Assembly: GCF_036321535.1 (NCBI RefSeq)
Contig: NC_087472.1
Location: 16,120,001-16,184,000 of the forward strand
Length of the DNA stretch: 64,000 nt
Reading direction: 5' to 3'
Origin: Camelus dromedarius
Taxonomy: Eukaryota
Position 1 is the stretch's first letter, and every line of letters begins with the position of its first letter. Position numbers and translations under genes: made by a program. Below, in pieces: positions 5,130-43,174 of the stretch. Under the pieces are notes generated by a model. The model had not been told where the DNA came from. It saw only the letters and a list, made by a program, of their open reading frames with translations, and did not search any database.

Positions 5130-6290
5130 TTTATAAAATACTTCTGTTTCCCCAGTGATTTGTTGTTGTGGTGGTTGTAAAGCTCTCCTTGTAGATTTTT
5201 ATTATTCACAATGAATACAAGTGTGATCAAGGAAGCTTGAGGTCTGCCAAGTACATCATCCAATGTTCCAGGCCAGAGCGCTGAGTTATATAAACCAATG
5301 CATTGAGGACAGAGATTTGGTGGCACAGTGTGGGGTCTCCAGGCCAGGACTGAAGTTATCTCCTTTATTAAAGTTAAAAAAGTTAGTAGGTTATCTAATA
5401 TCTTCCTATGAGAAGTGGTCCTTTTGATCACTTCATGGAGGCCACAAATAAACATTTGGGGATTGTGGGGTGGAAAGGGCAATTTCTGCCCGCTCTAGGG
5501 GAATGGCAGACCTACAGAGCACAGCAGGACATCAGTCCAGAATTCATGAGAACATGACCTGGCAGCAAGGGGCACACAGTTAACATCTGGTCAAGCCTGT
5601 GGTCAAATGTCGGTCCCTTGAGTCTGCAGTGTTTATTGTTACACTGCACTACCACATTTCATAAAGTCATAGTAGGGGCAGAATCCAAGTGAAAGGTTAT
5701 TTTTGGCATTGTTTGTTCCTAAAAATTCAATACTCTTTCTACTACTTGTATAAAATTTCCAGTTAACTAAAATTGCATGTTCTCTGTACAGCTTACCGTG
5801 GTTTAAATGTTCATCAAATACCTTATCCTTGTGGTCATGAAAAGGAGAGCAAGACTGTGGTGGTGTGTTCTGACCGAAGATGTGCCCGCTGGGTGAGTGG
5901 GCTCGGGTCTCTCCCTGGGATCTCATGAAGCTGTTGGGCTGCAGGTGTCAGGAACTCAGATCTTGCCACCCAGCCTAGAGGGCCTCCTGCCTGAGGGCTC
6001 CCCCCGCATCTGGAGGTCAGAGAAGCCCTCCTGCTCTCCCGCTGCAGCTGGCATTGACTTCTTTCTGTCACTAGTACTACCCACTCCCTTGTTAAAGAAC
6101 CAGATGCCCTTCAGGCTCTGAGCTCCTTGCACTCAGCTATGCAGATCCATGCCGACAGCCAGGTGAGATTTGGGGGTTACCCCTCACGTGTACTCTTAAC
6201 GTAGGAGCAGCAAGTATTAAGTAACTAATCAGCGGGTAGGCTGTGTGTTTTCCATGAGAACTGGGAGTTTGGGCTCTGGGGAAGTCCTGA
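5130..6290 (+). repeat. Segmental duplication, copy A (paralog of ~20840-22170)
   Basis: Colinear direct matches to copy B: 5190-5227 vs 20898-20934; 5332-5430 vs 21052-21150; 5849-6026 vs 21678-21855 (173/178 identical); ggtgagatttggggg vs ggtgacatttggggg downstream. Confidence 0.85.
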
Positions 6291-7750
6291 GGGCTGTGTG
6301 AGTAATTTCTTCCATTTTTTGAGGGCTTTGGATGGGCCAGGCTGTGTGTATCCCTCTCATAACCATTGTTGTGGGGATAAATGTGCTGATGAAAGGAAGT
6401 GTGTTTCAAGCACTGGACACTCTGACACTCAGAGTTAGGGATCTTGGTGCACAGGCACGTGGATGGAGCTGTATCCATGATGCCCAGCCCACGTGTGCAC
6501 ATAGAGAGCTTCGTTATTCCAGTGGTCAAGGGTCTAAGGCTCAGGCCTCTCCACACACCTCAGGGGGTCCCTTCCCCCTTCTGCTCTCTCCCTTTTCCTT
6601 GAAAGTGGCATCAACTTGGAGATGAGCTGGCAGGACTCAGGCAGCCTGTAGGAAGGAGGGACGGCCAGGGGCCCGCCCACTCTGAGGTCCTTTTCTGCTT
6701 TTTTCTCTGATTCCTTCCCCAACCCCAGGGAGGCCAAGACCTGAAAGGCATGGAGCTCCTTTCTGCCAAGACTTTGGGAGAGACTGATGATCACCCCCTG
6801 ACGTTCCCGATGGTCCTCCAGGCACTGCAGGGATGTTGGTGAGGCCCCGAGCAAGGGCAGACTCAGGCTGGGAGGGCTGTGCTTGTCCAGGAAGCCCCCA
6901 GGGCAAAAGTCTCCTCCAGACACAGGGAGACGGACAGCAGGGCTGGTCCTCTCTGCCTTCCTCCTTCCTTCCCATTCTTTTTCTCTGTCTATCTATCACT
7001 CTGTCTCTGTGTCCATCTGTCTGTTTCCCATGGACACAGAGTGTGCTTCAGGCCTGGTCTCCAGCCAGAGAGGCACAGACGTGAAGGTCTGGTCCCTACT
7101 GTGAGGGCTCTGAGTTTCTCTACTAATCCAGTCAAGTAGTCTGGGTCAGTGTTGGGCCACCATGGCTCTTCCAAATGAAGGTCTACTCTTGGTGACTGTC
7201 CCAAGTCCCAGAACAAGACCCAAGACCGTTCCCAGGCCCTGGCCCAGCCCTGTGGTGGGACAGCACGGAGCCCTCCTCATGAGGGGAAGGAGGAGGGGCA
7301 ACTCTGACACTAACCATCCACAGGTAGGCCGAACTGCACCGTCCTACGCCAGACTGCCCTCCCTCCAGGAAGCAGGCACCCGTCACAGGTTCCCAGGGAC
7401 ACCCTCACACTGACCGGCCGACAGATGGGCCAAGGTCTTGACCAGGCAGTCGACAGAGGAAAGTTACAGATGCCCAGTGAGCATTCCAGGTCATTTGCAT
7501 GCAATGTTCTTCAAACCCATTCAGACAAAGGAAACTACAACACTAGTTTTCCTGAGAAGATTTACAGTGAAGGCTGACAACTCTAATATTCAGAATACAG
7601 GAAAACAGGCACTTTGATTCCATTCATGAGTGGGTGAAGAATGGTAGAAGTCTTTGGTAGGAGGTTTGTAAATATTGTATAAATGAAGAATGGGAATGAC
7701 CCTTTTTGACATAATGCATTCACAATATTAAGCAAACGCTTTAGGAACCA

Positions 7751-12787: not shown

Positions 12788-13859
12788 GTGGGCAGGGCAA
12801 TGTCATGGACTACTGCGTGACCATGTGCACACAACGACGCCTCACAACCCGCCCCCCCACCCCCACATATGACCTTTCCCGTGGGCAGGACAGTGCTGGC
12901 ATTTGATCATCCTTCCGACGAGCCCTGGGCACTGTGACTGTGCAGGCCAACTGACATGACCCGGTAGCTGTGTGGTCTACCCACCTCAGTGGAGTGGAGA
13001 TGAGTTAAGCACCCAAGGTAGTCAGCCCTAGGGGAGTGGCAGCTTCCTGTCTGCAAGATTCACCAATGGAAGGCAGCTGCAGAAATCTCTCAGCAGACGG
13101 CCTCCTGGAAAGAAGGGGCTTCATCTCACTTTGCATGATCATGGAGCTTAGGGACCTTTGCTGCAGAGACATGAAGTCCCCGTATCTTTCTTCTATAGCA
13201 ACAGGAGGAATAACTCTTTTTGGGCTAGGAGTGGGAAAGAGCCAGAGAACTGATTATGCCTGGGTCTTGAAGGGAGGGCAAGAGTTCCACAGACAGAAAG
13301 GTGGGAAACGATATAAAAATCCTGAAAAAGGTGGCTGGCAGTTCTTTGGATCCATCGCTAGGACCAATCCTGGGAGGCTGCCATGCATTACTTTGTCCTC
13401 GGTATTCCCTGACATCCCCCAAGTGTCTGCAACCTGAACTGACTTGCCAAAATTCCAAGTACAAACCTTGGGTCCTTCACACACTGCCCAGCCCTGTACT
13501 ATCCGATCCCAGAGCTCGCACGATTCCCCTGCATCTCTGCCCTGATGTTTCTTCATGTCCGTATCTAATAGTGAAGAACTCACACTTACCTGTCAGGGTG
13601 GAAAGGGTAGAGCATGGAAGGTTTCCTGGAGGAGGAGACCATTGATCTAGGGCTGGGTAAAGTGGATAAGCAAGATTTCCAAAGTCTGAGATGACAGGAA
13701 ACAAAGGAAAAGATACGTGCCAAGGCTTCAGAAGTAGAGCCAGGCGTTGAAGGATGGACACAGATGTAGAAAGAGAACAGTATGAGCAATGATTTCAGTG
13801 CTTTGGCTGGGCCTTGAGAAATGGGCACTTTGCAGCAGACCACCTGGGGCAATGGACAA

Positions 13860-14530
13860 CCTCGCCGTCAATCATTGCAGGCCCACCAATGACGATGTCG
13901 GGGGCGGGGCCGTAGGACGTCCACGACGCCTTACCACGTAACCGCGCTCGCGACCCTGGATTGTACAGCGCGGCTTCCGTGGACCGTTCCTCCGCGTGAT
14001 GAGGGGACATGGCGGCTCCCTTTCCAGTGACCTCAAAAGTGTAAGTTTCATTGATTTCACTTCGTAGTGGGCTGTCCGCCGTGTGATTCGGAGAGAATCG
14101 GGTAGCTGGTGTGTCCGGGTACACTTTGACAGACGTGCGTCCCGGGCTCCTGGGCGGTTGGCGGAGAAGGCCTCCTGGCCGCGTTCGGCCGCAGTGCTGG
14201 GCTTTCTGTGCCAACGTGGTGAAACGTTCAGAACGTGTTCTCTGTTTAAACGCGGGTCTTGGACCGCCCCCTCCCCCAGGTCGTGGGCTTAACGCTTTGC
14301 GGTGTTTGCGGCGTAAAGGGTGGAGAGGGCTGGCGCGGCTGGCCGGGTCGGGGTGGGTGTGGGTCCGGCCCAGCGCGGTGGCCGTTGGGCGCCGCGAGCC
14401 GCTTTTGCCTTTCGCTGTCCGGGGTCGTTGGCTGGATGGCGTCGCCGGGGATTTGTTTGCGTCTTGGTCTTGGCCGTTTTCGCGAGATTGCTTACCAGTG
14501 ACAGGCTGCCTTTGAGCGCGGTTTTGTGTT
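13860..14530 (+). promoter_or_regulatory. Orphan CpG island with promoter motifs and candidate first exon
   Basis: CpG-dense. CCAAT 13886-13890; GGGGCGGGGC 13901-13910; ETS CTTCCG 13974-13979; YY1-type ATGGCGGC 14009-14016; donor GTAAGT 14041-14046; near-BANP motif TTTCGCGAGA 14478-14487. Confidence 0.7.
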
Positions 14531-15199
14531 TCATTTAACCACACGGCTTTAAGGTTAATAACATCTGTTGATTAAATTTCGGAATGGTCGTCTTCATGTG
14601 TTGCCTGAAAAAGAAAAAAATGATGAGAATTTCAACGTGAAAATGAGTAAACAGGTGGCCTGGTCCTTAATCCTGTTCCTCGGTTCCCTGCGGGTGCTGC
14701 GGTTACAGACACGTTGACTTTGTTACAATGTCAGCTTTCAGAATAACGTGATCTTGACAGTTTCCCATCAAAGTTTGGATCTGACTTTTTGTTGTGGTTG
14801 GAAACTCTTGCAGCGGCAGGCAGCAGCAAGGTGGCCTGGATGGGACTGTGGGAAATAGACTTCCAGGCTGTGGACACTCAGCGGCTCAGATACGTCTTCC
14901 CCTAGAATGGCAACATGGATCGGAAGGTAATTTAAAGCATTTCTATCTATGAAAAAGGGTAAAGATGGGACCTGTGGACCACATGGGTGGTGGGAAATGG
15001 TGGCCTGCCAGAGCACGCCCACAGCTGCAGGGTGGACATTTAGCTGGGAGGGATCCTGGAAACACAGGATACAATGAAAGTAATGCAAAGGTCAGTCCTC
15101 CTTCAGATGTTCACCCTGCCATGCGTTCTTGGCCATGTCTTTGCTTGCAGACTTGGCTGGGACCGCACATCCTGTTTGATCCACAGTCTGCAGTATCTG

Positions 15200-15352: not shown

Positions 15353-16201
15353 AATCCCGACCCCATTTCCGGAGTCCACATATTGGAGCCGAACACGCTG
15401 GTGTTTGGTTCAACTCTCCTTCTTACCACTGCTTCCCACTCTTGTCCAAGCTCTTTAGCCTTTGGCATCTTATCATTGAAATGGTTGTTCCCTTTCTCAG
15501 GGCCAGCAGGCTACCTTAGAAGTTACTCAAGGATCTCCTCGGAAAGCACACCTCTTTAATCCAACTGTGAAGCAACAGGGACGCCCAGGACGCCAGGCTT
15601 TTCCTTCCTCTCAGCAACGTTCTGCTCTGATCAACCTCTCGACACCTTACGTGGAGGCGGCTGTGGCTCAACACCTGCATCTGTGAGGACTTTGTAGCGC
15701 GTGAACCCTTGCAGGCAGAGGGTGCCTGTAGCCTGGCAGTGCCAGAAAGGTCTTCACTTCTTTCCTTTTCTGTATAAATCACTTCTTTTCTGTGTGGTGT
15801 TGAATTTATCGAATTCCAGTGAAGACATTTGGTCATTCGAAGGGGCGCTTGTAGCAGGGGGTGGGCGTTAAACAGAAACACGCACTGTTCTGAAGTGTTC
15901 TCAAAGAGGCTCGTAACCCTCAGGCTCAGCAGCTAACTCTGGTTCCTCTACTTCCTCTGCTTGCCTATTGGTACCAGTTTCAGCCAGAACCTGGCATCAT
16001 AGAAGCTGAAGTTCAGCCACCCGAGTTCAAAGTGCACGTCTGTTTATTGAGGAGAAGTGAGAGTGCCTAGCCTCTTCCCAGCACATGGGCATCTCCTGCT
16101 CTTTTGGTTTATCCCTGTAATGGGTTAAATTACTTTAAATCCTTGGAAGATGGGGGTCATGGTTCATTTCTCACTCAGTGAAAAATGAAACAGATACTGT
16201 T

Positions 16202-16797
16202 TTTTTTCCTGCCTCAGGTTTATTTGTACAAACAGCACAGGTAGACATGAGCCCCATGCAGACAGTAGCCCAGGGGTCACACTAGTCCTTCTGTCCTCAC
16301 ATCAATAGATGAAAGCCTCTACTCTGGAGCCTTTATGTGGGCCTGGGCACCTTTGGGAGACTGAGTCTGAGCCGGAGCTGCGGCTGTGGACTTGGTCTGA
16401 GCCTTGTCCTTGGCCTTTGGCCGACAGAGCCTGAGACCCTTGGCGATGCGGGCACGAGCACGTTTCCCGAGCTTGGGGTGAGCAATGCAGGCAAGTCAGC
16501 TGAGCTCGCGGCTGCTGCCCTGTGGGATCTTAGGCTTGACCTCCTTGGGCTTTCTGAGAGCCTTGACAGCTTCAGCACATGCACTCATGGCCTTGGCGTT
16601 GTTGGCCTGCATCTGCTTCAGGCCCTTCTTGTGCTTCTTGGCAAAGTGCATGTTCCTCAGGAACTTGGGGTCTACCCCCTTAAGAGATTTGTATTGTTGT
16701 GATCGGGGTTTTTTGATGCCGTTTCTGTGCCATTTTCGGGACTGGTTGTGTGTGGTGTGGTTCTTCGACTTGGCCATGCCTGTACCAGAGCCGGGGC
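16202..16797 (-). pseudogene. RPL29: RPL29 processed pseudogene (retrocopy)
   Basis: Intronless. ATG at 16777-16775 gives [24 protein letters not shown].... Premature TGA at codon 94 (16498-16496, CGA in the parent). The frame continues to the native TAG at 16321-16319. The 3'UTR has AATAAA (16224-16219) and a short poly-A. TSD tgaaacagatactgtt 16186-16201 / tgaaacatgtactgtt 16798-16813. Confidence 0.97.
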
Positions 16798-18299
16798 TGA
16801 AACATGTACTGTTCAGGAGAGGCTTTATCCTGACCCATGTTCCTTCACCAAGAGACATGACGGTGACCACATCTGGCTCATTTGCTAGTCAGAGCAGTTG
16901 TGAAACTTACCAGTAACCATGGCGCCTCCACTTCCTTCCACACAGATTTGTGCTGCCATCTGCAATCTTCCTGACTCTTCTCATCGGAGAGCCTAACTGA
17001 ATTTTTTTTATTTTCATTTTGTAGCACCTCTATTGTGGTGCGGTTCCTGTACAGTAAAGTGCACATATTTCACATGTACAATGTGATGGGTCTTGCAAGA
17101 TGTATCCACCAGAAATGAACTGTTTGGTGGGCGATTCTGCTGAGTACTAGCGCTGTAGGAAGTGGTCACAAGGCAGGGCATCCCTAACAGGCTTTTTCTG
17201 ATTGGTGGCAACCTCAGGAATTGGGACCCTTGAGGAGGGAGGAGGTGATACTACTGAGACTCAAGCTGGATGGAAGCTGGCTGCTTAGTTCTTTGCCCGG
17301 GAGCGCATTCCTAGGCCTGCCTTGTCCTGAGGCGTGTGCTCCATCAGCGTTTCCGCGCGTGTGGGAATGGTAATGTACTGTTGAGTTTTTAAGTGCGGTC
17401 TCCCCCGTCAGGCTCATGTTTGTCTTAACTATTCCTTCATGCCCCTTGTTTCTGTGGGTGACAGGAACAGAATGGGTAATAGTGGACACTCGAAGGCAAG
17501 GCCTTTTGAAATGAGATGTCTTCTATGTTGTGCTGATTCCCTGTTACATGCAGACAGTAGTTGACTTGCGACAGCAGCAGGCATTTTGAGAGGCTCGTTA
17601 GCCCACTGGAAATGATGATGTTGGTGGTGGTGGTAGCCATGATGGTGGCTGTGGCGGTGAGGGTGCTGATTAAAAAAAAAAGCCACAGCTGTCACTGGTA
17701 GAAAGCTGAATAGAATGGAGAACTGTCCTTAGTTCTTTTCATTGGTTTATTACCGAATCGTCTCAAAGCCTGTGGTTTAAGGACTGGTAGGGTCTCTGTT
17801 TCCCAGAGAACAGTCATGGTGTGCAGAATGGATTTTGCCTTGGTAACAGAGCCAGCAAAACTGTATAGGGGGCATCATAGCCAGGTTTAACGGGTCCTGT
17901 ATCTTGTGGTATTAATCACTAAGCTGAGAGAAGCCTTCTTACGTAACATTTTCTTGCATGAGAAACCAGCCATTACCCACACCTCCGTGTGCTCCCCCTT
18001 TCTGCTGAGCGTGGTTATCCCGAGGTCACACAGTGTGTTTTTGCAGTAGGAGCCATAAGTGGTCGTGATAATGTCATAAAAGTTGGGAGAATACATTTTG
18101 AATCAAATGGCTTTCATGGCTGAGTTGCCGGCCACCATGATTGTCGGTTCTTTTTGAGAGAAAATGACAGAGGGTAGAGGGCCAGACAAGGGCCGGAGCG
18201 TCCTGATCAGGAAAGATGGAATACCTAGAGGATAGGTCCTTCCTTCAGAGGCCTGCAGCCTGCAGGTGGGGAGAGGACCGGGGACAGCAGCACTGCAAA

Positions 18300-19945
18300 G
18301 AGCTGCTCGTAGAGATCGAGGGCAAGGGGCTGGGGTGTGAAAGTTATGAGAAGCATCGGCGTTCAAATAAGTGTCTTGTGCCCCTTCCGCATCCCTGGTA
18401 CTGCCTGGGACCGGCACAGCACGGGGACCAGGGTGTCAGTGCACGTGGCTGAGTGCGCCACGAGAAGGCACGGCCTTGTGGCAAAGAGGAGACTTTCGTG
18501 CTGGGGGGCTGCTCCTGATTTTCTAGCATCCCTGAGGCTTTTGGACTTTGCTGCTAGGGAAGTTCTTGTGCTTGTGCCTCATGCTGTGCCCTGCCTTAGG
18601 CTGGGGAAAGTGGCTCAGGAAAGGTGGGCCTTCGCCCTCCTACGCTGGGGCCTAGCATGGTCCTCCGAGGGAGTCTCCTGAGAGGCACCTGCTGACGCTG
18701 ATGTTGAACGTGGTGAATGATCCCACTTGGGCGAGCTGACCGCCCAGCGTCTCATGTTGTACTGAGCTGTGCTCCTCAGAGAGGCTAATGAGAGTGAGCT
18801 GCTGTTGCTGGTGTGTTCTGATACTCTGGCCAGACAGCTCTCCTGTCGACACTCCCGTGGCTCGGATGCCTTGTTGAAGTCCTGCCCAGGGCACACACCG
18901 GCCACGGCTGCGTGGGGGGCGTGGGACGTGTTGGGTCCGGGGGAAGAAGTTGGCCGTGGCCGGTTGTCGGGCCTCGGTGCTGATCCGAAGGAGCTGAACA
19001 GAACCAGACCCAGGCTGCAGGGCAGTGGCCAGTTGGGGATCCTTAAGATTTCCACTTGCATGTGTGTGGACACGGTTGGAGCTTGTCCGTGTTCGCTGTC
19101 TGCCCGCTTCCGCTGAGACACTCTGCACATGGGTTGGAAGACAGGCCCCGGGGGAGGGTCCCGTCAGTGGACAGTGCATGAAGCCGGGGCGTTGGGATCC
19201 TCGGGGACAGGTGCGGATGAGCCTGGATGTCCAGGGACCTCCCGGGTCAGGTGTCCGGGCTGGAGGAGGGAGCCCTCCTATGCTTCTTGCTGAAGAGGGC
19301 ACCCCCCCCCCCCAGGCCGTGGCTGTCCCGTCCCTGGTTTATGTGCTGAGAAGCATTGCTGCTTGGTGGTCTGGCCCCTCTGCCATTTTGGTCTCCCTGT
19401 TGGGGTAGCTGACCCTCCCTCAAGGGGACCTTGTCTGCACTGTCAAGGAAGAGGCAGTGCTCAGCAGCATTGAGAATTCGTGCATTGTGCGTGACACTGC
19501 GCTGCCGGAGGGGTGGCAGGGGATGGGGGTTGCACTTTGAGGAGGGAGGGGTGCTGTGATTTCCCCGTTTCGGGCTTTTGATGTCTCTCGATTAGTGAAA
19601 TCTGGGGCCGGCATGTAAGTGGCCCCCAGGGATCTGAGGAGGCTCTGCGGGTATGAGAGCGACCGTGGGGAGGACAAGGGGCTTTGGTGTGAAAGTTGTG
19701 GTGGGTGTTGGTGGAGTCAGGGATGTGTCTCCTGTCCCCTTACCCCGTTCCTCCCACTACCTCTGGGTGTCCCCGGCTGTGATGGAGAAGATAGCACGGC
19801 CCACTGATGGGTGTGCAGTGAGAAAATGTGGGCCTCTTGCAAAGGTGAGACATTAAAATTGGGAGCAGGTCCTTATGCGTCATTTTCCTAGTGACTCGTG
19901 GGCCTCTCCGCCAGGGGAAGGCTTTGCTGTGCGTGCCTCTCTCTG
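18300..19945 (+). repeat. Degenerate local direct duplication (~18300-18590 vs ~19655-19945)
   Basis: 18318-18345 vs 19670-19697 is 25/28 identical. Further colinear blocks at the same ~1.35-kb offset, e.g. 18481-18494 vs 19839-19852. Confidence 0.65.
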
Positions 19946-20839
19946 TGTGCTGTTTTATGTTGTTTATTGAATTTCCTACTGTTGCGTAATAACAGAATCT
20001 GAGGGAGCTCTGAGGAGGAACAGCCGTTGCTGAAACCCTCCTGAGACACTGTCTCCCGCACAGCCCCTCAGCGTTCCATCTTCCTTGATCTTCTCCTGCA
20101 GCTTTGTTGGCTCTTGGGCACTGGCTTTGATGGCCATCTCTCTCTCTGATTTTCAGGAGGGTGTAGCAGAGTTTCTGGCTTCAGCTGCTCAAGTTGTTCC
20201 CTGTTTACTTACCTCTCGCCCTGGACAGGCATCCTTTGCTGCCAGGTCCTTGAGGGAACATTCCTGGCTTGTAAAATTGGCAGGAGGCTTCTTTAGCTTT
20301 TCGAAAAGATTTGCATACATTGCAAAGAGGCAGAGAAAGAGCTGACAAGTTTTCCAAAGGAAACCCTCCCAGAAAAGGGAGGGATGAAAGCCTCCTCTCT
20401 TTTTCCGACAGGGATTAAGGAAACCTTGGTTTCTCCTCCTGCTCTGTGTTTGGGCTCCGCATCCTACCGTGACACACCAGGTCCCCTTGGCATCTGCCCC
20501 CTCCCCACAAGTGGGGCTTCCCGAGTCCTGGCCAGAGTCCGGCCTGTGCAGAGAACTTCTTTAAGTGGAAGTCGTGCCAATGGTACCTTGAGGAAAAGGG
20601 ACAAGTAGGAGCGAGTGTTCCCCCTCCGGCTTGCTTATGCGTTTGTCAATGTCTGTGCCCTGATGGCGAGTTCTCTGTGATCAGTCCGAGGGAGGAATAC
20701 AGCCACAAGCCTTGTTTTCCGATGGTTTCAGTCGATACACTGATGTGTCCAGTCTTGCCAGTTGGAACTGCACTCTTCCTCTCATGTCCTCCCTCTCCTG
20801 AGTGTCCTGGAGGAAATAAATCCTCCCACGTGGCTGAGG

Positions 20840-22170
20840 AATTTGTAGAACACTTCTGTTTCTCCAATAAAATGTGTGTGTTGGGAAACTTCCCACTCGT
20901 AGATTTTGTTATTCGCAGTGACTGCGAGCGTGATGGGTGAAGATGCGTCTCTGTGTGTGCCTGAAAGCATGTGCCGGGGCGGGGCTCTGAGCTCTGTGGT
21001 CTGGGGCATTGGTGGCAGGGGGTTGGTGGCAGGGGGTTGGTGGCAGGGGGCGGGGTCTCCAGGCCAAGGCTGAAGTTCTCCCCTTGCTAAGGTAAGAAAG
21101 GGAGTAGGAGATCTGGCACCTTCCTTTGCGAAGTGATCCTTTTGGCCACCAGGTGAGAAGCACAAGTACGTGCCTGGAGGCTGTGGGCGTGGGGGGCACC
21201 TCCTGGTCCTGCTCAGGGTGAGGCATAGGTGGGGTGGCCGGTATGCTTCTGCAGAACATCAGCCCCGAAGTCCTGAGGCGCGAACCTGGGAGCAGTGAGC
21301 ACACAACACCGTGAACTCCTGGTGCATTCTGCATCAGAACCCAAATCCCCTGAGTCTTAGGACTTCTTCACTGTGGCACACTCACTGCCTGTCTTTGAAT
21401 GGACAGAATCAAAAGGTAACTCAATAGTAGATCCTTTTTGCTGTCATTCATTGCTTAACCATATCAAAACTCTACCCACTCTCTGTAAAATTTCCAATAT
21501 TAAACTTACATTTCATCCGTATAGGTGAGCATGGATTAAACATTTTATCCGTCAGCCTTTTAGTTGGCCATTTGATGCTGGAATCCTCATGCCAGGAGAA
21601 CGTTAAGGTCCATTTTCATCTGCCTAATGACCCTTTGGCCTTGTGGTCATTAAAATCTTCTCCCTGGGGAAAAGGGGGCAAGACTGTGGTGGTGTGTTCT
21701 GGCCGAAGACGTGCCCGCTGGGTGAGTGGGCTCGGGTCTCTCCCTGGGATTTCATGAAGCTGTTGGGCTGCAGGTGTCAGGAACTCAGATCTTGCCACCC
21801 AGCCTAGAGGGCCTCCTGCCTGAGGGCTCCCCCCGCACGTGGAGGTCAGAGAAGCTCCCCTGGCCTCCTGTAACAGCTGGAATTGATTTATTTATATCAT
21901 CATTATCACCCGTTATGTGTTAAGGAGTGGGTCGCCCATTAGGCTGTGAGCCACTCCTACCCAGCTACACTTATGTATGTTCCCCTCTCCTAGCATAGTG
22001 TCCCCATGATGTGTGCCCCTCTCCCCAGAATTTCTGTTTTGGGTGGTGGGGCTTTTGTAAGGGACCGAGGGGTCAGGAGAGCAGATAGCCGGTGACATTT
22101 GGGGGTATTACTATTAACCCGACTCCATTTCAGAACACGTTTTCTTCTTGTAATGAGAGTCTGGCAGTGA
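20840..22170 (+). repeat. Segmental duplication, copy B (GC-shifted paralog of ~5130-6290)
   Basis: See copy A. The offset grows from ~15710 to 15829 because of insertions in B. Confidence 0.85.
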
Positions 22171-22369
22171 ATTTTGTCCCAGTTCCGGTACAGCTGGCAC
22201 TGCCCGTCTCCACTGGCCCCCGGAGGAGGGGGCGTGGTCAAGTGTGTGGTGTCTTCCCTTGGCCTGACTCGGTCTGAGCGAGTTCTGTGAGTTAAGGTAC
22301 CCACAGCCTGAGAGAGCCAGGGGCACACTGAGGCCAGGATTGCTGCTGCTAGGATCTCTATGCATTGCT

Positions 22370-22545
22370 TTTTATATTATTTTTCTTCCATTTTTATAAA
22401 CTGAAGTCTAGTCAGTTTACAATGTTGTGTCAATTTCAGGAGTACAGCATAATAGTTCAGTCGTACATATACATACATATATTCCTTTTCATGTTCTTTT
22501 TCATTATAGGTTGCTACCAGATATTGAATATAGTAGCCGATGCAC
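22370..22545 (-). mobile_element. L1 3'-end fragment
   Basis: aactgaagtctagtcagtttacaatgttgtgtcaatttcaggagtacagc... after a T-rich tail. Confidence 0.8.
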
Positions 22546-23427
22546 GTTAACTTGCACAGATCAGGGAGAAGTTTGCATCTTTGTTTTTCAGGAAAGCAAG
22601 GAATTTGGGAACTGGAGAAGTCTTTAGGAATATGAGTGACCTCAAGGGATAGAGTAATAATTGTTCCCATTTATTGAGATCTTTTCTGTGCCAGGTTTTG
22701 TACTGTTCACTATTTGTAGCATTTTACTTAATCATGACATCCCCTGTTGGTAGAAGACACCATCATCTCAAGTAATATAGTCTTTGAGCTTCCACAGCTA
22801 AGATGTGGATTCTGACCAGGAGTCAGTGTGTGCCTGACCCAGGCCCCATGCCCTGAACCACTAGTTTCTGCTGACTTTAAAACTAAGATGAAGGTTTCAG
22901 CAGGTAAGGAAGGCCTGAAGCTCTGGGTGATTTTAGAACTGAAGGCAATGAATGCCAGTGTAGCTGCTCTTCACCACGGAACTGGGCCATCTCCTTCAGC
23001 CCCTCGCCTCCCTACTATTTACAATGCTTGTGTGACACTACAGCACATAAAAAAACCATTAACTTATTTAACTCATTATGAGTTTTAAACTTTTAATTTC
23101 CTTCCAGTTAAAAAAATGTAAAGTACTATTTCAATAAATACTTTTTCAAATAGCCTTTTTCATAATTTTTAATTATCACCTTAAGATAAGGTCCTAGACA
23201 GTGGACCTTAGAGTAGGAACTTTGAAAAGATAGTTTATTCATATTGCTAAATTGCTTTCAGGAATAGTTGTATCAATTTATTTTCCCATCTGCAAGATAA
23301 AATGTTGTCTGTTCATTTTAATTACTGCATACATTGAGTAGATGCACAATAGATCATTTAAGCATTTCTCTAGTATTTCAATCCATTCTTGTTATAAATA
23401 AGGCTGCCATGAACATCTGTGGAGCAT

Positions 23428-23560
23428 GGCACTGGAGGCCCCAGACGTGGGTTGAATTCCTTTTTTACCTACTAGCTGTGTGTGACCTTGCACACCTGAG
23501 CCTTCATCTGGAAAATGTAGAAATAATGGTTGCCTCAAAAGGTTGTGATGAGAATGGACT
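23428..23560 (+). mobile_element. MIR SINE
   Basis: gcactggaggccccagac...tactagctgtgtgtgacctt...catctggaaaatg. Confidence 0.65.
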
Positions 23561-24329
23561 AATTATTAATTCAGTCGAAATGAATATGTCATTGCCCCTT
23601 GTCTGCATTTTGACTTTTTCATTTCCCCCATTTAATACAATTATTCGATCTATAATCTGTTTTGATTACATGATTTCTAAAGTTTTTTCACCTCTGAGGT
23701 TCTATAAGTTAAAACGGAAAAAGTTGCAGCAGTTACAGACAAAATCAACTTACTAACTTTTTCTTATTACGTTTGACTATCAGAATATGTTTAAGAGGAT
23801 TTGTTAAAAGGCAGAGTGCAGGTAAAATAAGTGGATTAAGTTCCTGTATTGTGTAAAATCATTTCATTTTCTTTTTTCTGCCCTACCTGGTAAGGAATAA
23901 AAAGTAATCAATGCATAAACTTCAAATATAACAATCTAAGTTGTCATTTACTAAAATTCCAATGTTTTTGTAAGATTTTCATCTATCTTGTCTTTAGCTC
24001 CTTTCTCCCAAATCTATGTAAATAGAATGCCAGTACTTTGAATAAATCCGCTAAATACGCACTCCCCACTGAAAGCCTAGGGAGAGTGCAACAGAAGCTT
24101 AGGAAGCGGGGAGCTGTCTCTTAACAAGACAGCTTTGGGAGCCCCAGAAAGCACCAGACCTGCTTCCACAGGGAGGCTGATCCCTTTTCTTGACCTCCTG
24201 TTAGAGGGCACCTCCTAGGGCCCTTTTGCCTCTGAACCCAAGGAAGCTTGTTTAACCCGATGTTTCCCAGGCCCTGCTGTGTGTGCATCCCCATCCCCCG
24301 GGGTGACTGTGTATGTGTGTGTGTTTGTG

Positions 24330-24430
24330 AAGATACAGATCCCCGGGCCCAACTGCCCAGATATTCATAAGTCGGGTAGGACCTGCAAATCAGCATTGCA
24401 ACAAGCTTTCTAGCTGATTCTGATACAACA
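24330..24430. mobile_element. MER5-type hAT-Charlie fragment
   Basis: cagatccccgggccc...ggacctgcaaatcagcattgcaacaagctttctagctgattctgat resembles MER5A. Confidence 0.5.
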
Positions 24431-24901
24431 GATCCACAGATCTGCACTTGTCAGCCACTGACAAATGACAAATTGTCCAGATGGGGAGAGTGAGGTCGAG
24501 AAAGACTGAATGGACTTGCTTAAGGTCACACAGTTGTGTTTCCAGGGAAGGTTAACACAACTTTGTTTCTCCCAATCTGATGGTGAATGAGGTAACTGCA
24601 TAATAGTCAAACCTGAAATGTGAAGGTGCAACCTGGCACAGCCTTCCAGGAGAGACAAAACGAGAGAAAGTTCTGGCATGGGGGGAGAAGGAAGAATCTA
24701 AACGTTTAACATTTCACTTCGGCACTACCTGAAAAAAATTTTTCAACTAACTTTGCTTCTTTGGATGGCTGGCCTAAATTTCATTTTGGTCAGCTTTCCC
24801 CACCCCACATTGAATTTCACACTTTTTTTATACTGTTATGGGGCAGAAAACCTTTTGACAGTAATTATCTGGCTTTACTCAGTATCAGTGGAATATTTAT
24901 T

Positions 24902-25170
24902 AAAACGATAGGATGACTGAATGCAATATAGTATCCTGAATGGGATCCTAGAATAGAAAAGAGACATTAGTGGAAAAAACTAGTTAAATTTGAATAAAGT
25001 CTGTAGTTTAGTGAATAGTAATTTACCAAGGTTAATTTCTTAGTTTTGACAAACGTACCATTGTTATGTAAGACGCTAACCTTAGGGGGAACTCGATGAT
25101 GAATATACAGGAACTCTACAACTTCTCTGTAAATATAAAGTTATTGCAAAATAAAATGTTTGTTTGAAAA
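24902..25170 (+). mobile_element. Old L1M (L1MC/MD-like) 3' end
   Basis: aatgcaatatagtatcctgaatgggatcctagaa...aataaagtctgtagtttag...gttttgacaaacgtaccattgttatgtaaga. Confidence 0.75.
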
Positions 25171-28100
25171 ATAGGCTTAGGTAAGAACCAACCAGAGCAG
25201 TCAATGAAGCAAAGACAAATTGCTAATCAGAGTGCTGATTCCCTCTCACACTGGGGGGAAATCCTTTTGGGAGATGACTGCTTGATTTGTGCGAGAATGT
25301 TACTTAGGAAAAAAAGCCTGTTATATCCCAGAAGATAACCTGGCTGAGATGGAGAGGAGAGTGTGCTTTTTAATTTCAGGAGAATCGAATGGTGGTTTCT
25401 TTCTTTAATAGCACATTCTGTTTGTGCAATTTTCATGGAGTTAATTGTTTTCCATTTAAGCAATCAACAAAAATTGGAATAATCTCATAATGGGGTTTAT
25501 ATACAGCAGGCTCACGTGGATACACAGCTTAAGCTGAAAGATAACTATGTTATTTATGTTTTCTGTAGCAGTAAATATAAAAATATAAGTAATATTTGGT
25601 AAGTTTAGTCGTCTGCATTGGGCTGCATTGGCCCTCCTGGAGGAGGTGTATGCACTCCACATGGAGGATGTGGGAGGTCTCAGACGTCTTCAAACCTCCT
25701 GTCCCCTTCCCATCTTCCTGCGACAGTGTCTGGACCATCCTCAGATTGTATTCCTTCATTCAATAAACATTGACTGAGTACATTAATGATAACAGCTAAA
25801 ACATAAGGAGTAATTATTATGGGCCAGGTGATTTACATGAATTCCTTTAATTCTCACAACAACCAAACGAGGCAAGAATGAGTTGTTATCTTTGATTCTG
25901 CAGACGGGGGTGGGGGGCTCAGGCTGTTTAGGAAACTTGTCCAAGGTCAGACGGGATGTACACGGTACAGCTGGCTTTTGAGCCTGGTTTTATTTGAATT
26001 TCTCACTTTGGACCATAATGCGAAAATGCCTAGCCCTACAGTGAACCATGCCACAGGAGCAGAGGGCAAGTGGCAAAGAAGGAGTTTGACCTGTATGCCG
26101 GTGGGAGTGGGGAGCCGGGGGCAGCGTGATTGGCTGGAGTCCTAGATTTGCGAGTCAGCCGCAGAGTGCTGGTCATCTAAGTCATGGGAGAAGAAGGCAT
26201 CTCTGAGGGAGAGGAGAGGACAGGCGAGGACCGCCTTGAATATGCCCCCACGTAGACGGCAGGAGATGGAGAAGGGGTTTGTTACAGAGTGAGCAGAGGC
26301 AGGAGAGGGAAATATTGGGGATACTAAGTGCAGAGGGAATTTCAAGAAGTCAACAAATGCTCTGAGAGGTCAGATGTGCTGGAGGATTAAGAAGCAGTGG
26401 CACTGAACAATGAAATGTTCATTCGTGTCATTTGAGTTCACGGCAGTACAATGGGGGAATCAGATCCATACCTAGAGGAGTAAGGAGTCAGGAGGCAGCG
26501 GGGGAGGAGAGGGAGCAAGGATAGGGTGCACGCCTCTGCAGTTTGGAGTGAGATATAAAGAGAGAGAAAGAACAGTGCCATTTTTAAGACTGAGACGCTC
26601 TGAAAGGTGGGGGATCTACTGTTGAGTGAGAGAGTGATTCCATGCAAGGAGGAGAAGGACCATTGATGCGGCCAGAGCCAGAGCAGGTGGCACACGGATG
26701 GATGGAGGTTGCCGTGGGTGGAGGAAAGAGCAGGCAGTGACTCCACTTGGGACTGGGAGCATTTGTGGCCAGGTCCTCCCTGAGAGAACGTTCCTTCCTC
26801 TTCCTGCTACATGCTCCCTTCTCTCTCCTGGTTTCTGCGTAAAACCAGGAGGCTCAGAATTGTCACTGAGGTCACCAGCTGGGGCAGCCTGAAGGCACTG
26901 TCCACCTAGAGGCTGGGCCTGTGGGTGGCGTCCAAAACAGATGTCTTCTTGGTCATCATGGAACTTATTTCAAATCAGAGGTGCGATTTCACCAAGGGCT
27001 TCTGCTTTTAGTCTTTCATCAACACCACAAAATTGCATTATCCCACTGATCATTAGATTACTTTCGCTAACATCATAATCACATTGCACACCCACATATA
27101 CATCACTATTCACTTAGGATAATCAGTTTTAATGACACTCGCTTCGGTTTCTTTCATAAATCATGTTCTTTTATGAGATAATGGAGGAGAAACATCTAAT
27201 TTTGATCTCAGACAAATGAAAAGTGAATGCATGTGTTTTTAAGTGTATTTTTTGTTGGTTTACCATGTCCATTATTTAAAGAGGAAAGAATATCTCCTGA
27301 CTTCTCTTTTAGAAATAAATGAGGCAAAAGTATAGTGGATTTTGAATACCAAAGCATTAGCTGTAATGCACTGCAAACAAATAATAAACACAGCTCCTCC
27401 TTAGTAGCTTTTGCACAAATCTCAATTGAATAGAAATCAATGGTTGTAAGCAGCATGTGTGATATCCTGCCAACGTGTTAAGGAGGAAAATCTTAACACC
27501 ACACCTTTACAGGAGCAAAATCAAACGCTGAGCCTGCCCTGTTGTCTGCAGAAAATAGAAGCGCAATTTCTTCCATCCAACAAACATATATTGAATTCCT
27601 AATATGCGCAAGGCAAAGTACAGAAATGGGTAAAACACATTTTCTGCGGTACCTGCAGAGAGTGCTTCAGAAGACAGCAGCCTTGTCCCACCCATTCCCC
27701 CTCCATCCATCTCTCCAAATGCACACCCAGAGATCCAAAAGTGCATGGATTTTACTTCCCTTACCCCATGCCCCTCCTCCGCTCCCTGGGGAAGGGACAG
27801 CTCTCAGAAGTTCCCTGTAGGATAGGACTAAGCCACCCTCCTTGATGGACCTGCCCTGAGATCCCACCCCTGTGACTTCCTGCCCTCCCTCCCATTCCAT
27901 CAGGAGGCACCAGATCCTTGCCTCAGGCTCTGCTTTAGGGGATCCTAGCTAAAGACAGGACTCAGAGGGAGAGGTTTTCTCCTCTGGAGGGAACAGAAGT
28001 CAGCCTGGGGTAGCAGTGTTCAAGGAGAACTGGATCCATCCTGCCTCAGGGATGATGGTGCTTAAAAAAACCAACCAAATAAAAAAGCTCACGTTTTCTG

Positions 28101-28238
28101 CTGTTGAGCTGATGGCATGTTCTAGTTGAGGGAGCAGACAGGGCATATGAGTTCATTCACTTGTTCGTGCTAGCTGCCAGGATAAAAGCAATGACAAGGC
28201 GAAATGGGAGCAATGAGGAGGCAGTATTATTTGGGGGG

Positions 28239-28258
28239 TGTGTGTGTGTGTGTGTGTG
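28239..28258. repeat. (TG)10 microsatellite
   Basis: Read directly from the sequence. Confidence 0.9.
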
Positions 28259-28467
28259 GAGTGGTGGGATTGGTCAGAGAGTCTCACAGAGATTGTGTGG
28301 TGGCGGTGTTTGAGCTAATCTGTCCTGATGAATCTGAATCCCCAGGGAGAGAAGAGGACCAGAGACGTCTTGCCAATCTTTCTCCGCATGTAAACCGTGC
28401 TCACTGCCCTACAGTTTATCTTTCTCCAAAATCAAGTCCAAATTCTTTGTGGCATAGGAAGCTCTTT

Positions 28468-28556
28468 AAAATACAGTCCTACAACAAGGCCCTACTGTGT
28501 AGCACTGGGGACTATATTCAATATCTTGTAATAACCTATAATGAAAAAGAAAAAAT
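28468..28556 (+). mobile_element. Short L1 3'-end fragment
   Basis: caacaaggccctactgtgtagcactggggactatattcaatatcttgtaataacctataatgaaaaag. Confidence 0.75.
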
Positions 28557-29187
28557 ACGGTCCCAGGCTGCCCAGGGAAGCCTTTTGGTTGCATACTCTT
28601 TGTCTCCCTGAGCTTCTCTTCGTATTTCGAGAACACCTTTTTTCCCAGTTCCTTCCCTTTGCGTGTGCTACTCCCGTCACCTATCATGCCCATCTCCCTG
28701 TCTTCAGCCTGGCAAGGTGACCCTCGTTGATCTAGGACCCAGAACAAGAGAACACCTTAGCAACAACCCACAGGGCTCTCCGGAGCCGCCGCCGCTTTCC
28801 CCGGTGCAGACACGCGCTGGGGAGCCCGGCAGGCAGGGAGCACGCTCGCTCTTCTGACTGACTTGATGGGCTGCGAGTCTGCTGCCCAGGTCTTCTCCAT
28901 GGAGAGATAACTCCAAAATCCACTCACTTCCGCCTATAGAAATATTGAACCCCTTCGGTTTCAGTCTTCCAACACTAACCACTGTGGGGAAACCAAGACC
29001 TTTGGGAGAATGGCATTTCTTCTGGGCTCATCTCAGGTAGGCAGGTTATAATTTTCTGTTAAGATTACCCCAAACCCAAGACCTACACTCTGTTGATCTC
29101 TTTATCCAAATTGCCTTTAGATAATTAAGAGAAAATTTGGCCCTCACTACAAAAAAACATTTAAAAAGCTATTACCTTTCCATCTTT

Positions 29188-30608
29188 TTTTTTAAACATT
29201 TTTTTATTGATTTATAATCATTTTACAATGTGTCAAAATCCAGTGTTCGGCACAATTTTTCAGTCATTCATGGACATATACACACTCATTGTCACATTTT
29301 TTTCTCTGTGAGTTATCATAACATTTTGTGTATATTTCCCTGTGCTATACAGTGTAATCTTGTTTATCTATTCTACAATTTTGAAATCCCAGTCTGTCCC
29401 TTCCCACCCTCCACCCCCCTGGTAACCACAAGTCTGTATTCTCTGTCTGTGAGTCTATTTCTGTCCTGTATTTATGCTTTGTTTTTGTTTGTTTGTTTGT
29501 TTTTGGTTTTGTTTTTTAGATTCCACATATGAGCGATCTCATATGGTATTTTTCTTTCTCTTTCTGGCTTACTTCACTTAGAATGNNNNNNNNNNNNNNN
29601 NNNNNNNNNNNNNNNNNNNNNNNNNNNNNNNNNNNNNNNNNNNNNNNNNNNNNNNNNNNNNNNNNNNNNNNNNNNNNNNNNNNNNNNNNNNNNNNNNNNN
29701 NNNNNNNNNNNNNNNNNNNNNNNNNNNNNNNNNNNNNNNNNNNNNNNNNNNNNNNNNNNNNNNNNNNNNNNNNNTCCTGAAGTAGATTTCCTTCTGGATA
29801 CAAGCCCAGGAGTGGGATTCCTGGGTCATATGGTAAGNNNNNNNNNNNNNNNNNNNNNNNNNNNNNNNNNNNNNNNNNNNNNNNNNNNNNNNNNNNNNNN
29901 NNNNNNNNNNNNNNNNNNNNNNNNNNNNNNNNNNNNNNNNNNNNNNNNNNNNNNNNNNNNNNNNNNNNNNNNNNNNNNNNNNNNNNNNNNNNNNNNNNNN
30001 NNNNNNNNNNNNNNNNNNNNNNNNNNNNNNNNNNNNNNNNNNNNNNNNNNNNNNNNNNNNNNNNNNNNNNNNNNNNNNNNNNNNNNNNNNNNNNNNNNNN
30101 NNNNNNNNNNNNNNCTTCTGCCCATTTTTGGATTGGGTTGTTTATTTTTTTCTTATTGAGTCGTATGAGCTGCTTATATATTCTGGAGATCAAGCCTTTG
30201 TCGGTTTCACTTGTAAAAATTTTCTCCCATTCCGTAGGTTTTCTTCTTGTTTTACTTCTGGTTTCCTTTGCTGTGCAGAAGCTTGTAAGTTTCATTAGGT
30301 CCCATTTGTTTATTCTTGCTTTTATTTCTTCTAGGAGAAAATTTCTGAGATGTATGTCAGATAATGTTTTGCCTATGTTTTCCTCTAGGAGGTTTATTGT
30401 ATCTTGTCTTATGTTTAAGTCTTTAATCCATTTTGAGATGATTTTTGTATATGGTGTAAGGGAGTGTTCTAGCTTCATTGTTTTACATGCTGCTGTCCAG
30501 TTTTCCTAACACCATTTGCTGAAGAGACTGTCTTTATTCCAATGTATATTCTTGCCTCCTTTGTCGAAGATGAGTTGACCAAAAGTTTGTGGGTTCATTT
30601 CTGGGCTC
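29188..30608 (-). mobile_element. 5'-truncated camelid L1 (ORF2 C-terminus and 3'UTR) with TSD
   Basis: ORF2 peptide [22 protein letters not shown]...[12 protein letters not shown]. Poly-T tail. TSD ttacctttccatcttt 29172-29187 / ttacttttccatcttt 30609-30624, with a TT/AAAG endonuclease site. Partly N-masked. Confidence 0.95.
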
Positions 30609-33577
30609 TTACTTTTCCATCTTTAATCTGGCCCATTAAGCCTTTCCTGAATGAATATAAACCTTTGGACTCAGGCCTGTTGCCCCATCCACTTCAGCTT
30701 TCATTCTCAGTGCCTCATTATGTCTTTCACAGCAGCATTATGTCTTTGCTGAAGCAGAATTACAGCAAAAGAAGTTAATTATTATGGAGTTGATATGATG
30801 CGCCTAGAAGAAGAAGGTTGGAATGAAGCCTTTTGAAGGAATATTATTCCCCATTGTAACAGGTTTTACTGCTATTAAGAATTAGTACACGATGTTTCCT
30901 ACAATNNNNNNNNNNNNNNNNNNNNNNNNNNNNNNNNNNNNNNNNNNNNNNNNNNNNNNNNNNNNNNNNNNNNNNNNNNNNNNNNNNNNNNNNNNNNNNN
31001 NNNNNNNNNNNNNNNNNNNNNNNNNNNNNNNNNNNNNNNNNNNNNNNNNNNNNNNNNNNNNNNNNNNNNNNNNNNNNNNNNNNNNCTATGAAACCATGGG
31101 AAGCCAAAGGACTTTCATTATCAGACAGAACTTGAAAATATGAATAAGACACCACTTCCCCAAGAACCACAAGATCAATATGTGATTGCAGCGGATGGAG
31201 CTGAACCATGCATTTGCTGCCTAATCTTGGCTTCAGATGAGTGCCAAATGGCAGTGAAGTAGGTCTTAAGTGACCAACAAGGGCTCAAATGGGTTGCTTA
31301 GTAAAAAACATGGCATTTTCAATTAAATGTCAAAGACAATTACATGGAAAACATCAGAGAGCTTCAGAAGTAAGACAGGAAGATTACATTTCACTAACCT
31401 CACACTCCATCACCAAACTTCCTGTCTTTTGGCTGAGAGAAACTTATTTGTTCCAGGAAAGCATGACATTCTGCATTCATGAAAAGGCCCAATAAAGTGT
31501 CACTTTCCAGATAATATGTGGGTGATTTAAGGTCATAGAAGTGTAAAATGGCAGGATTCTTCTGTTTTTGATCTCTCAGCCAGCATCTAGAACTCTATTG
31601 AAATTCTTGAACCTGGCCATCATTCTTATGGTAAAAATAAAATAAAATATCCCAACAATCTAGTTCCTTTACTGCAGAATAGACAAATCCTTTGGCATTT
31701 TCATTGGCTCTGTGTTTTCCCCTTTCCCCAGTCCCTCCAATCACCATTTAATGATGGGATGCCTGGGAGCTATAACAAATCCAGGCTGAAGTCTTCAGGC
31801 ATCATGTACATGACTGGGGTCTCCTGGTGATTTGGAGGACCCAGCTGTTTGCCCTCGGAACTCATTCCAGAAGTGCTGGACTAGACCCAGCATAATCTCT
31901 GTTCACAGATAGACCAGCGGAGGAAGCTGTTTGTCCACTACCCTCAGAGAAACCAAGAAGTGGGTTCTTCTTATGACCAGACCAAGACCAGTCAAGCCAA
32001 ACTTAAGAAGAAACACCAGCTTGTGTTTGGAGTTCCTCTACCCAACCTTTAGGAACCTCCATCTTTTCTCTTCTGTATCCTAGGCCCAGATACCCTGGAG
32101 AGCACCTTAAGGTGATAATGTATTGTGAAATTACTATTCTCTGGAGTTCAGCTATAGATTAAGAGAACCTTTTGAAAGGACATGTAAGCATTTTGACGTC
32201 ACTTGGAAATTTTGTGGAAGTTGGCCCCTTCAAGCAGTTTTGTGATTTCATGTAACTCATCTGTGCAGAGATGTCACTTTCTTTACCTCTCTATAACTGA
32301 TGCCAAACTGCTTGTGAGCCCCCATTTCCACTGATGGAGGAAATTGCTAAACCTTGCCCCTTTAAGATGACTCAGTATCTTCCGGTTTAAAACTTCATCT
32401 CTTTGCGGGTAATTAATTACTCATTTGCTTCTGCCTTTCAACTCAGTCCTTTCAAAGTTCACTATTAGGACTTTTCTCAACTCCCCAGAATTTTCTCCTG
32501 TACCCCTCCTCATCCTCCTCTTTCCCTCCCTCCTCCTCTTGAGGACGGTGCCATTTTGCAGGAAGCCACCCCCCTGTACACGTAAGTGCTTTACCATATC
32601 GGCTGCCAGAGCAGAGTGCATCATTGTGAGACCACTGTATCCTTCAGAAGTATGTGGGGAAATCATGTTAATTAAAATTTCTTTTCCTCCTGGGAAAAGA
32701 ATAACTTCAAGCTAAAGTATCAGAGAGTGGTTGACTGGACACTCTCATTATTCCAGGTAGCTGTAAGAAATAAAAAAAAAAAAAGTCTCTCACAAATGTG
32801 CTTTAATATGGGAAAGAGAGCAAAACCCAGCACACTGAATATTTCATGGATATCAGCCATAACTCCATGCGATTGCAGGGGAGTTGAGAAAAACATCATT
32901 TTTAATTATTTTTCATTTCATTGTAGGAAGCTTTGATCCAATTTATTTATAAATCTGGTGAAAAGCCTTGTACATCTAAGATGACAGCAGATTGAACAGT
33001 AAGGAAGGTAGCTGTATTTTTCCCATAAAGACAAGTTAAATTAACCCACAGGAATCTGTTATTTATGTGGTACAGTGTCTGACTTCACTATTCTGTAAAA
33101 TGTCTGCTCTTTGTAATCATATCTATTTTATGTTCCGTGGGGTTATTCAGAAAGTAAGTTAACAAACGTGACATTTTAAAAAGTTATTTAAGGAAACTGA
33201 TTTTTGTTTTTACAGGCCAACAGCAGATATTGAACTGATGCCTCATTGCCACCTTTTCACATAAGCACAGGAGAGGTCCAAACCTCCGTCATCAAATCCG
33301 GGAAGGAAGCTGCCCACACCACTGGAGGCTCTGCTTTTTTTTTCTAAAACATATTCCCTCTTTTCATAGATGCATTTTATCAACAAAAATTTAAAAGAAC
33401 AGAACAGTGAAACGGAAGAAAACAACTTCTGTCTACAAAATTCCACAGACTGCATGGATTTCTGGAGCAGGAATGTTTTTGCCTCCGCAAACCTGTGCGG
33501 TTATCTGGCAGGGGGTGGGGTTCAGTATTTAAAGAAGCAGCACATGAACTGAGGGTATAGAGAGATCACGCGTCTCC

Positions 33578-42010: not shown

Positions 42011-42185
42011 TGATTCTTTTCACTTATTTTTTCTTGATTTTTAAATTTTTATTTTATTTTTGTGTGTGTGGGGTAATTAGGTTTATTTGTTTGTCTGTTT
42101 ATGTATTTAATGGAGGTACTGGGGATTGAACCCAGGACCTCGTGCATGCTAAGCATGTGCTCTACCACTGAGCTATACCCTCCCC
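42011..42185 (-). mobile_element. Camelid tRNA-derived SINE
   Basis: Reverse reads ggggagggtatagctcagtggtagagcacatgcttagcatgcacgaggtcctgggttcaatccccagtacctcca...cctaattacccc. Flanking TSD-like taggatac. Confidence 0.95.
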
Positions 42186-43174
42186 ATTAGGATACATTTT
42201 ATACAACCTCATTGACAAGGAAAGGATTGGGTCACTGGCTCAACGAAAGGTGATCAAAACAGTTTCTATCAGCAAAAATTTATCTTTCTGGGACACAGAG
42301 CAAAAGGAGGGGAGAGTGGATTGATTTTTTTTCCAGGTCGCTCCGTTGTTTTCTAGGAAACCTCTGACCATTCCAGCCCACTATGGTGCATCCTCAGAGT
42401 TTTCCCTGCATTCGGGCCCTTGCCACAGACCAGTCAGACATCTGCTCTCCTTGGGTTCATATGTGTTGGCTGTATTTCCTTACATAAATGTTAAGTTCCC
42501 TGAGAACATGGACCAGTCTCTGTTGAAGATATTGGGGTACCCGATAGGATATAGTTAGTGGAAAGAAAACATTTTAAAACCACAAATTGTCAAGTAAGGG
42601 GGAAACGAGCATCTCTCGAGCACCTACTCTGTGCCAAATCCTTTGTGAGGTGCCCTGGCACCACCTCGTATTGGCATGTGTGCTTGGGTGGATTAAGGGA
42701 GCAGGTCGGCACTGCCCACAAGCTGTGTGCCCCTGACCAAGTTCCTTCAGCTCTCAGAGATGCCACTGCCTTATATATGCAGTGAGGATGATAACAGCCT
42801 CCTTCCTGAGTTGTTGTGAGGGTCCAGTCAATGTTTGTGAAAGTATGTGGTAAACTGAGAAGCCTTAGACCAAATATTCTTGTTACTGGGCACTATAGAG
42901 AAGTTTTATAAGTGAAGAAGCCGAGGTCCCGGCCTTCCAGAAGGTTATTGCTTACTAGAATGGACGAAATTGCTTATGACACTTTAAAAAAATAATAACA
43001 TCAGATAATGTGGGTAACGTCCCAAGGTTGTTAAATAAAATATTTTTATTTAACAAGGTTGTGGAAGTGCTGAGTTATCCAGTTAGCAGTGTCTCCATCT
43101 CTGCTTCTCTCTTTTCTAAAATTCAAGCTCTGGCCCCTACCCTCTACCTCCTTTAGTGCCCTCAGAGCATGTGT

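Follow-up and report, generated by a model that had tools for sequence, protein, structure and literature searches.

Why should 178 bp be almost the same in two copies of a repeat whose flanking sequences have long since diverged? The question is raised by a 64,000-nt stretch of the Camelus dromedarius genome (assembly GCF_036321535.1, contig NC_087472.1, positions 16,120,001 to 16,184,000 of the forward strand), which is called the window here and to which all positions refer. A preliminary description of this DNA had attributed the identity to non-allelic gene conversion between copies 15.8 kb apart, and had suggested that the exchange may keep two alternative first exons alike.

A near-identical core within a diverged duplication

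Both halves of the initial observation, a near-identical block and strongly diverged flanks, were borne out. Positions 5849-6026 and 21678-21855 were identical at 173 of 178 positions without a single indel; the five differences (copy A letter/copy B letter) were 5873 A/G, 5881 T/C, 5922 C/T, 6009 T/C and 6010 C/G. Outside this core, 525 of 878 aligned positions were identical (~60%), with several indels. Local BLAST revealed that the core belongs to a collinear duplication of ~1 kb, the two copies of which, A and B, lie 15.8 kb apart in direct orientation. The features concerned are as follows (the outgroup and contig L003 are described below).

5130-6139, plus strand: copy A of the ~1-kb duplicated unit, by local BLAST; the sequence to its right, up to 7480, is the right context of the single outgroup unit.
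20842-21967, plus strand: copy B of the duplicated unit, by local BLAST; it is preceded at 15957-20842 by the left context of the single outgroup unit.
5849-6026, plus strand: presumed converted core of copy A; 173/178 identical to that of B, with 9 of 9 informative sites joining A and B, a 17-nt gap in common with B and a GC content of 62%.
21678-21855, plus strand: presumed converted core of copy B; 178/178 identical in a second dromedary assembly and uninterrupted in contig L003.

The left edge of the core was sharp and adjoined indels, with copy B carrying ~90 extra bases directly left of it, and the right edge was graded. Accordingly, identity was ~60% in the left flank and fell from 80% to 55% along the right flank, and the extended high-identity match covered 242 nt at 89% identity (5841-6082 against 21670-21911).

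A trivial explanation for such a pattern would be that the assembler had copied one core onto the other. The two cores have 66 of about 1000 31-mers in common, which would favor such a collapse, as would the fact that another C. dromedarius assembly, GCA_000803125.3, disagrees with the window nearby. In that assembly (L002:10481-16223), window positions 15773-21037 (5.3 kb) are inverted and end at a 25-N gap, with the inversion breakpoint (21037/21052) inside copy B. Because the order found in the window was spanned across 21037/21052 by three independent contigs, this inversion is likely a scaffolding error. Moreover, both stretches, together with the junctions between core and flanks, were present in DNA runs of many independent studies: the fraction of sampled words recovered in runs from at least 8 studies was 0.92-0.96 for the copy-A stretch and 0.84-0.92 for the copy-B stretch. 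Window 21052-29585 was 99.88% identical to GCA_000803125.3, in which core B matched at 178 of 178 positions, all five diagnostic letters included. The five differences between A and B themselves also speak against collapse. An assembly artefact, which the preliminary description had allowed for, is thus scarcely credible.

Genealogy of the core and of its flanks

The history of the core was examined in a quartet composed of copies A and B from the dromedary window, a third camel copy, C (contigs L001 and L004), and an outgroup, O (contigs L006, L009 and L010). The camel contigs L001, L003 and L004 are Logan contigs from consecutive runs of 2025. When compared with window 19707-21305, they differed by about 0.8% substitutions and one indel. 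This divergence is ~10 times that between the two dromedary assemblies, which suggests that the contigs probably come from another camel taxon. Judging from the exact loss of an annotated intron and from their shares of 31-mers, they would be derived from RNA. The outgroup contigs were found by a profile-free ORF search, among host-derived contigs in metagenome assemblies. They were 99.7% alike, came from at least two sample sets and were 66-68% identical to the window. The outgroup is probably a ruminant, as suggested by the record label XIEF21-1, which probably denotes the ruminant gut metagenomes of Xie et al. 2021 (PMC8199421); the core was covered by this one outgroup lineage only. Pattern scans of metagenome contigs gave no match, though the second pattern recovered all of the fetched copies.

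In both C and O, the core was found at the homologous place in the unit. The outgroup core was 74-75% identical to those of A and B, the core of copy C was 79% identical to them, and C and O agreed with each other at 70%. The GC content of the core was 62-63% in A and B, compared with 50-53% in C and O. When sites informative for the quartet were counted by segment (copy A coordinates), the following numbers were obtained.

260 bp left of the core (5586-5848): 25 sites joining A with C and B with O; 6 joining A with O and B with C; 2 joining A with B and C with O.
Core (5849-6026): no site joining A with C and B with O; none joining A with O and B with C; 9 joining A with B and C with O.

The genealogy therefore switches at the core from ((A,C),(B,O)) to ((A,B),(C,O)), and the contrast between the left segment and the core was strong (Fisher p = 1.2e-7). 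At nine positions, A and B have a substitution in common against a letter on which C and O agree, and A and B also share a 17-nt gap at a place where C and O both carry sequence. Furthermore, when the order of sites was permuted in the manner of GENECONV, the high-identity fragment was never reached in 10,000 trials (P <= 1e-4). Under the genealogy of the flanks, the nine substitutions and the deletion would each have had to arise twice in identical form; one copying event explains all of them. Six of the nine substitutions were AT to GC and one was GC to AT, and this base bias, together with the GC content of the core, fits GC-biased conversion, although the numbers are small. We therefore consider ordinary gene conversion, with one copy overwritten by the other, to be the explanation of the patch common to A and B (probability about 0.85). 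On this point, the discordant genealogy and the shared derived states support the preliminary description.

Selection was considered as an alternative. A functional element in the core, such as an exon end or an enhancer, might have kept the two copies alike since the old duplication in the absence of any exchange. Consistent with this, core B is transcribed (see below), and the core is better conserved than its flanks across lineages, as identity between C and O was 70% in the core versus about 54% just left of it. However, purifying selection cannot yield a 17-nt deletion and nine substitutions in parallel in A and B, nor does it account for the switch in genealogy. The low identity of the core in copy C and in the outgroup likewise argues against deep conservation, a possibility that the preliminary description had itself raised. 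Taken without exchange, selection is a highly improbable explanation.

A young transposable element, or some other mobile piece, might also have been inserted independently into both copies. The sharp left edge beside indels is the one feature that would suggest such an origin. Against it, the core lies in place in copy C and in the outgroup at 70-79% identity and is therefore an old part of the unit. Within the 64-kb window, only two matches to the core were found, and the core matched no Rfam family at gathering score and no Pfam family; a search of 5200-6600 in the E-value mode of Rfam returned chance-level matches only. The probability of a double insertion is thus negligible. Nonetheless, the whole ~1-kb unit may be of old transposable-element origin, the test for such elements having covered the copies in the window, Pfam and Rfam.

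Gene conversion thus remains the preferred account. In terms of mechanism, a double-strand break in one copy, inside the camel lineage, would have been repaired by synthesis-dependent strand annealing, with the paralog 15.8 kb away as template and with no crossover. Such non-allelic conversion would have overwritten about 180-240 bp, leaving both copies with the same derived sequence, and the older divergence of the flanks (about 40%) would have been left untouched. Any further exchange would have to start in the core, because the flanks, at about 60% identity, no longer offer a substrate.

The age of the event can be approached from the 5 differences in 178 positions, or 2.8% (95% interval 0.9-6.6%), compared with the ~0.8% that separates the camel taxa in adjacent sequence. 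This comparison suggests that the last conversion event probably predates the split of the two camel taxa sampled; about half of the five differences lie at CpG sites, which would inflate the age estimate. In the flanks, A and B differ by about 40%, more than B and the outgroup do (about 33%). This would place the duplication no later than the split between camel and outgroup, unless copy A evolved faster. As for the direction of transfer, distances to C alone lean to A as donor, and a rough rescaling with O included fits B about equally well.

Transcription across copy B

The preliminary description had further placed in the core the end of a plus-strand exon with the donor TGG/GTGAGT. The hexamer GTGAGT was indeed present in both copies, starting at 5893 and at 21722. 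The features that bear on its use are listed here.

5893-5898, plus strand: GTGAGT, candidate donor in copy A; not conserved in C or in the outgroup, and no support was found for it.
21722-21727, plus strand: GTGAGT, candidate donor in copy B; read through by the apparently RNA-derived contig L003.
21510-21899, minus strand: exon of a spliced transcript that holds core B; L003 runs from 21899 to 21510 and then joins 21285; the upstream end given is that of L003, which may be chimeric.
21286-21509, minus strand: intron, AAT/GTAAGT ... CTCCCAG/GTTCGC; exactly missing from L003, with splice letters and with a spliced translation that matches protein P0002.
19707-21285, minus strand: downstream exon or transcribed stretch of the same transcript, as far as the contigs cover it; L001, L003 and L004 align from 21285/21325 to 19707/19747 at about 98%.

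The sole contig over the donor site, L003, read through it unspliced. The same contig skipped 224 nt (21286-21509) and continued from 21285 to 19747, and the skipped piece reads GTAAGT...CTCCCAG on the minus strand. The gene model Cadr_000002703, whose coding sequence begins at 21532, has the junction seen in L003; when 21532 to 21510 was joined to 21285, the translation was MLTYTDE-M-FAPQDFG, the start of dromedary protein P0002. This minus-strand intron is thus backed by two independent sources, L003 and the dromedary annotation. Core B (21678-21855) lies wholly within the upstream exon of this transcript and, in place of a pair of alternative first exons kept identical, the converted tract is found inside an exon on the opposite strand.

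In RNA runs labelled as reproductive system, the share of words recovered was 0.53-0.59 for the copy-B stretch and 0.14-0.16 for copy A. Contigs like L003 and L001 would give shares of 0.44-0.49 for copy B and 0.11 for copy A. The GTAAGT donor of the minus-strand intron was found only in copy B (copy A carries GC there, and the letters differ in C and O as well), which points to a young exon structure. The transcript is probably non-coding, because its ORFs match no Pfam family; the dromedary annotation, which was reached through an ORF within copy B's left half, labels the minus-strand product a hypothetical protein. Among the individual searches, P0001 and the 95-aa ORF of copy A gave no match in Pfam, and exact look-ups of two plus-strand ORFs gave none. 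ORFs over the core also gave no match in protein searches, at least partly owing to the length window that was searched.

For a plus-strand exon, it can be said that GTGAGT is a good consensus donor, that it occurs in both copies, and that copy A has an ATG 13 nt upstream of it. However, copy B has ACG in place of this ATG, and at the position of GTGAGT copy C reads GTCGGT and the outgroup GTG-GT. Moreover, 134 of the 178 nt of the tract would then be intron, L003 crosses the site unspliced, and the intron that L003 does lack is on the minus strand. It is therefore very unlikely that a plus-strand exon ends in the core and that conversion keeps two alternative first exons identical, although occasional use of the donor is conceivable.

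Arrangement of the unit and its genomic setting

Several structural observations were made on the related contigs. L003 is a mosaic: to the left of the core it resembles B, whereas the 51 nt to the right match copy A without a difference (L003:1-233 against 5845-6077). In these 51 nt, dromedary copy B keeps letters common with the outgroup, and L003 has the letters of A. Inside the core, L003 agrees with A at 5873 and 6009/6010 but with B at 5881 and 5922. Its core, the sole core sequence from the sister taxon, matches A at 175 of 178 positions and B at 174 of 178 and may blend both copies. The mosaic may reflect a longer or later conversion tract in the sister taxon, or A and B transcripts may have been fused during de Bruijn-graph assembly.

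L001 (1-1420) and L004 follow the left half of copy B at 98-100% identity as far as about 21300 and there pass into the diverged unit C, the right flank of which had no match in window 1-23800. This join may be a structural difference at one locus, with a longer intron in the sister taxon, or unit C may belong to a separate paralog. Under the one-locus reading, recombination between units would have removed the intervening piece from the dromedary.

In the outgroup (L006:92-8349; also L009 and L010), a single unit lies between the homologues of 15957-21630 and 5808-7480, and thus combines the left context of copy B with the right context of copy A. With the sequence left of copy B denoted L, that right of copy A denoted R and that between them M, the camel arrangement reads unit-R-M-L-unit and that of the outgroup L-unit-R, the former being a circular permutation of the latter. 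This would fit crossing over between two old copies in one of the lineages; a complex rearrangement in the other would fit as well. The outgroup unit also carries an insertion of ~630 bp between its left part and the core (L006:1866-2493, with a gene call at 1872-2159; also in L009, L011 and L012). This insertion, which was absent from all camel copies, has an ORF matching the Pfam family UPF0184 (PF03670) and resembles a processed copy of a gene for a small coiled-coil protein.

The camel non-crossover conversion, the crossover-type junction in the outgroup and the B-C join of the sister taxon at about 21300 would all fit a unit that acts as a recurrent recombination module, with the core as the place where exchanges resolve. 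We put this forward tentatively and regard it as rather unlikely. If it were true, a ~1-kb non-coding repeat would have repeatedly reshaped about 16 kb upstream of a sulfotransferase gene, the CpG island at 14 kb included, in different mammalian lineages.

The sulfotransferase gene lies on the plus strand, so that copies A and B are 28-44 kb upstream of it. An ORF from 50735, broken by a masked stretch, matched a solved heparan-sulfate 6-O-sulfotransferase (E = 3e-37), and 5' coding exons of such an enzyme were found at 49351-51247 on the plus strand, partly masked (50772-51023). We take the N-terminus of this protein (MDEKSNKLLLAL), together with an upstream ORF (MALPACA...), to be that of HS6ST2; the upstream ORF presumably corresponds to the long N-terminal extension of HS6ST2, which it resembles. 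The gene is thus probably HS6ST2. HS6ST2 is X-linked in other mammals, and the locus is probably on the X chromosome. If it is X-linked, the male germline would offer no homologue, intrachromosomal templates would be favored, and hemizygosity might have boosted the exchange between A and B.

Between copies A and B, the window contains a CpG island at 13501-14700, with GC up to 63% and a CpG observed/expected ratio of 0.74 to 1.04. The "14-kb CpG island" of the preliminary description therefore exists, but it sits at 13.5-14.7 kb and is not 14 kb long. It is far from the GC-rich 5' end of the sulfotransferase gene itself, at 49-52 kb. Elsewhere in the window, ~8-nt-period repeats were observed at 29573-31150 beside masked stretches, together with fragments of an L1-like ORF2 (ORF 29516-30478, minus strand). 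At gathering thresholds, the sole Rfam match in the whole window was a tRNA-Ala(AGC)-like sequence at 42111-42182 on the minus strand (55 bits). Similar sequences were present in the outgroup and in the window at 42046-42188 and 44572-44716, which makes a tRNA-derived SINE more probable than a gene.

Interlocus gene conversion between dispersed low-copy repeats is known in mammals from globin, opsin and sex-chromosome amplicon genes. The dromedary locus resembles these systems in having a near-identical tract of about 0.2 kb inside much older paralogs, a tract genealogy that disagrees with that of the flanks, derived states common to the copies, changes that may be GC-biased, and copies on one chromosome in direct orientation. 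Unlike the globin, opsin and amplicon cases, the sequence here is non-coding, lies far from a conserved gene body and is present in two copies in the window; its flanks are also unusually diverged (about 40%), with little homology left to start a new event. Alternative first exons homogenised by concerted evolution, as in clusters of variable first exons, offer a second comparison: here too a gene is preceded by two direct repeats, A and B, both of which have a consensus GT donor on the strand of that gene. In contrast to such exons, the transcript here runs on the opposite strand through the donor, which is conserved neither in C nor in the outgroup. A lineage-specific spliced lncRNA upstream of a gene is a further parallel: the transcript has two exons, canonical splice sites, no recognisable protein family in its ORFs and a donor found only in camel copy B, although the dromedary annotation does call the product a hypothetical protein.

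The process at this locus is an ordinary one that is now well documented there, and it has no bearing on a long-standing open question. What the locus offers is a small, clean case of interlocus gene conversion in non-coding DNA, in which polarised derived states shared by the two copies, an indel included, tell conversion from conservation. It also cautions against reading function into a block merely because paralogs conserve it. Finally, it corrects the annotation of this region: the tract lies in an exon of a camel-specific minus-strand transcript, and not in alternative first exons of the downstream gene.
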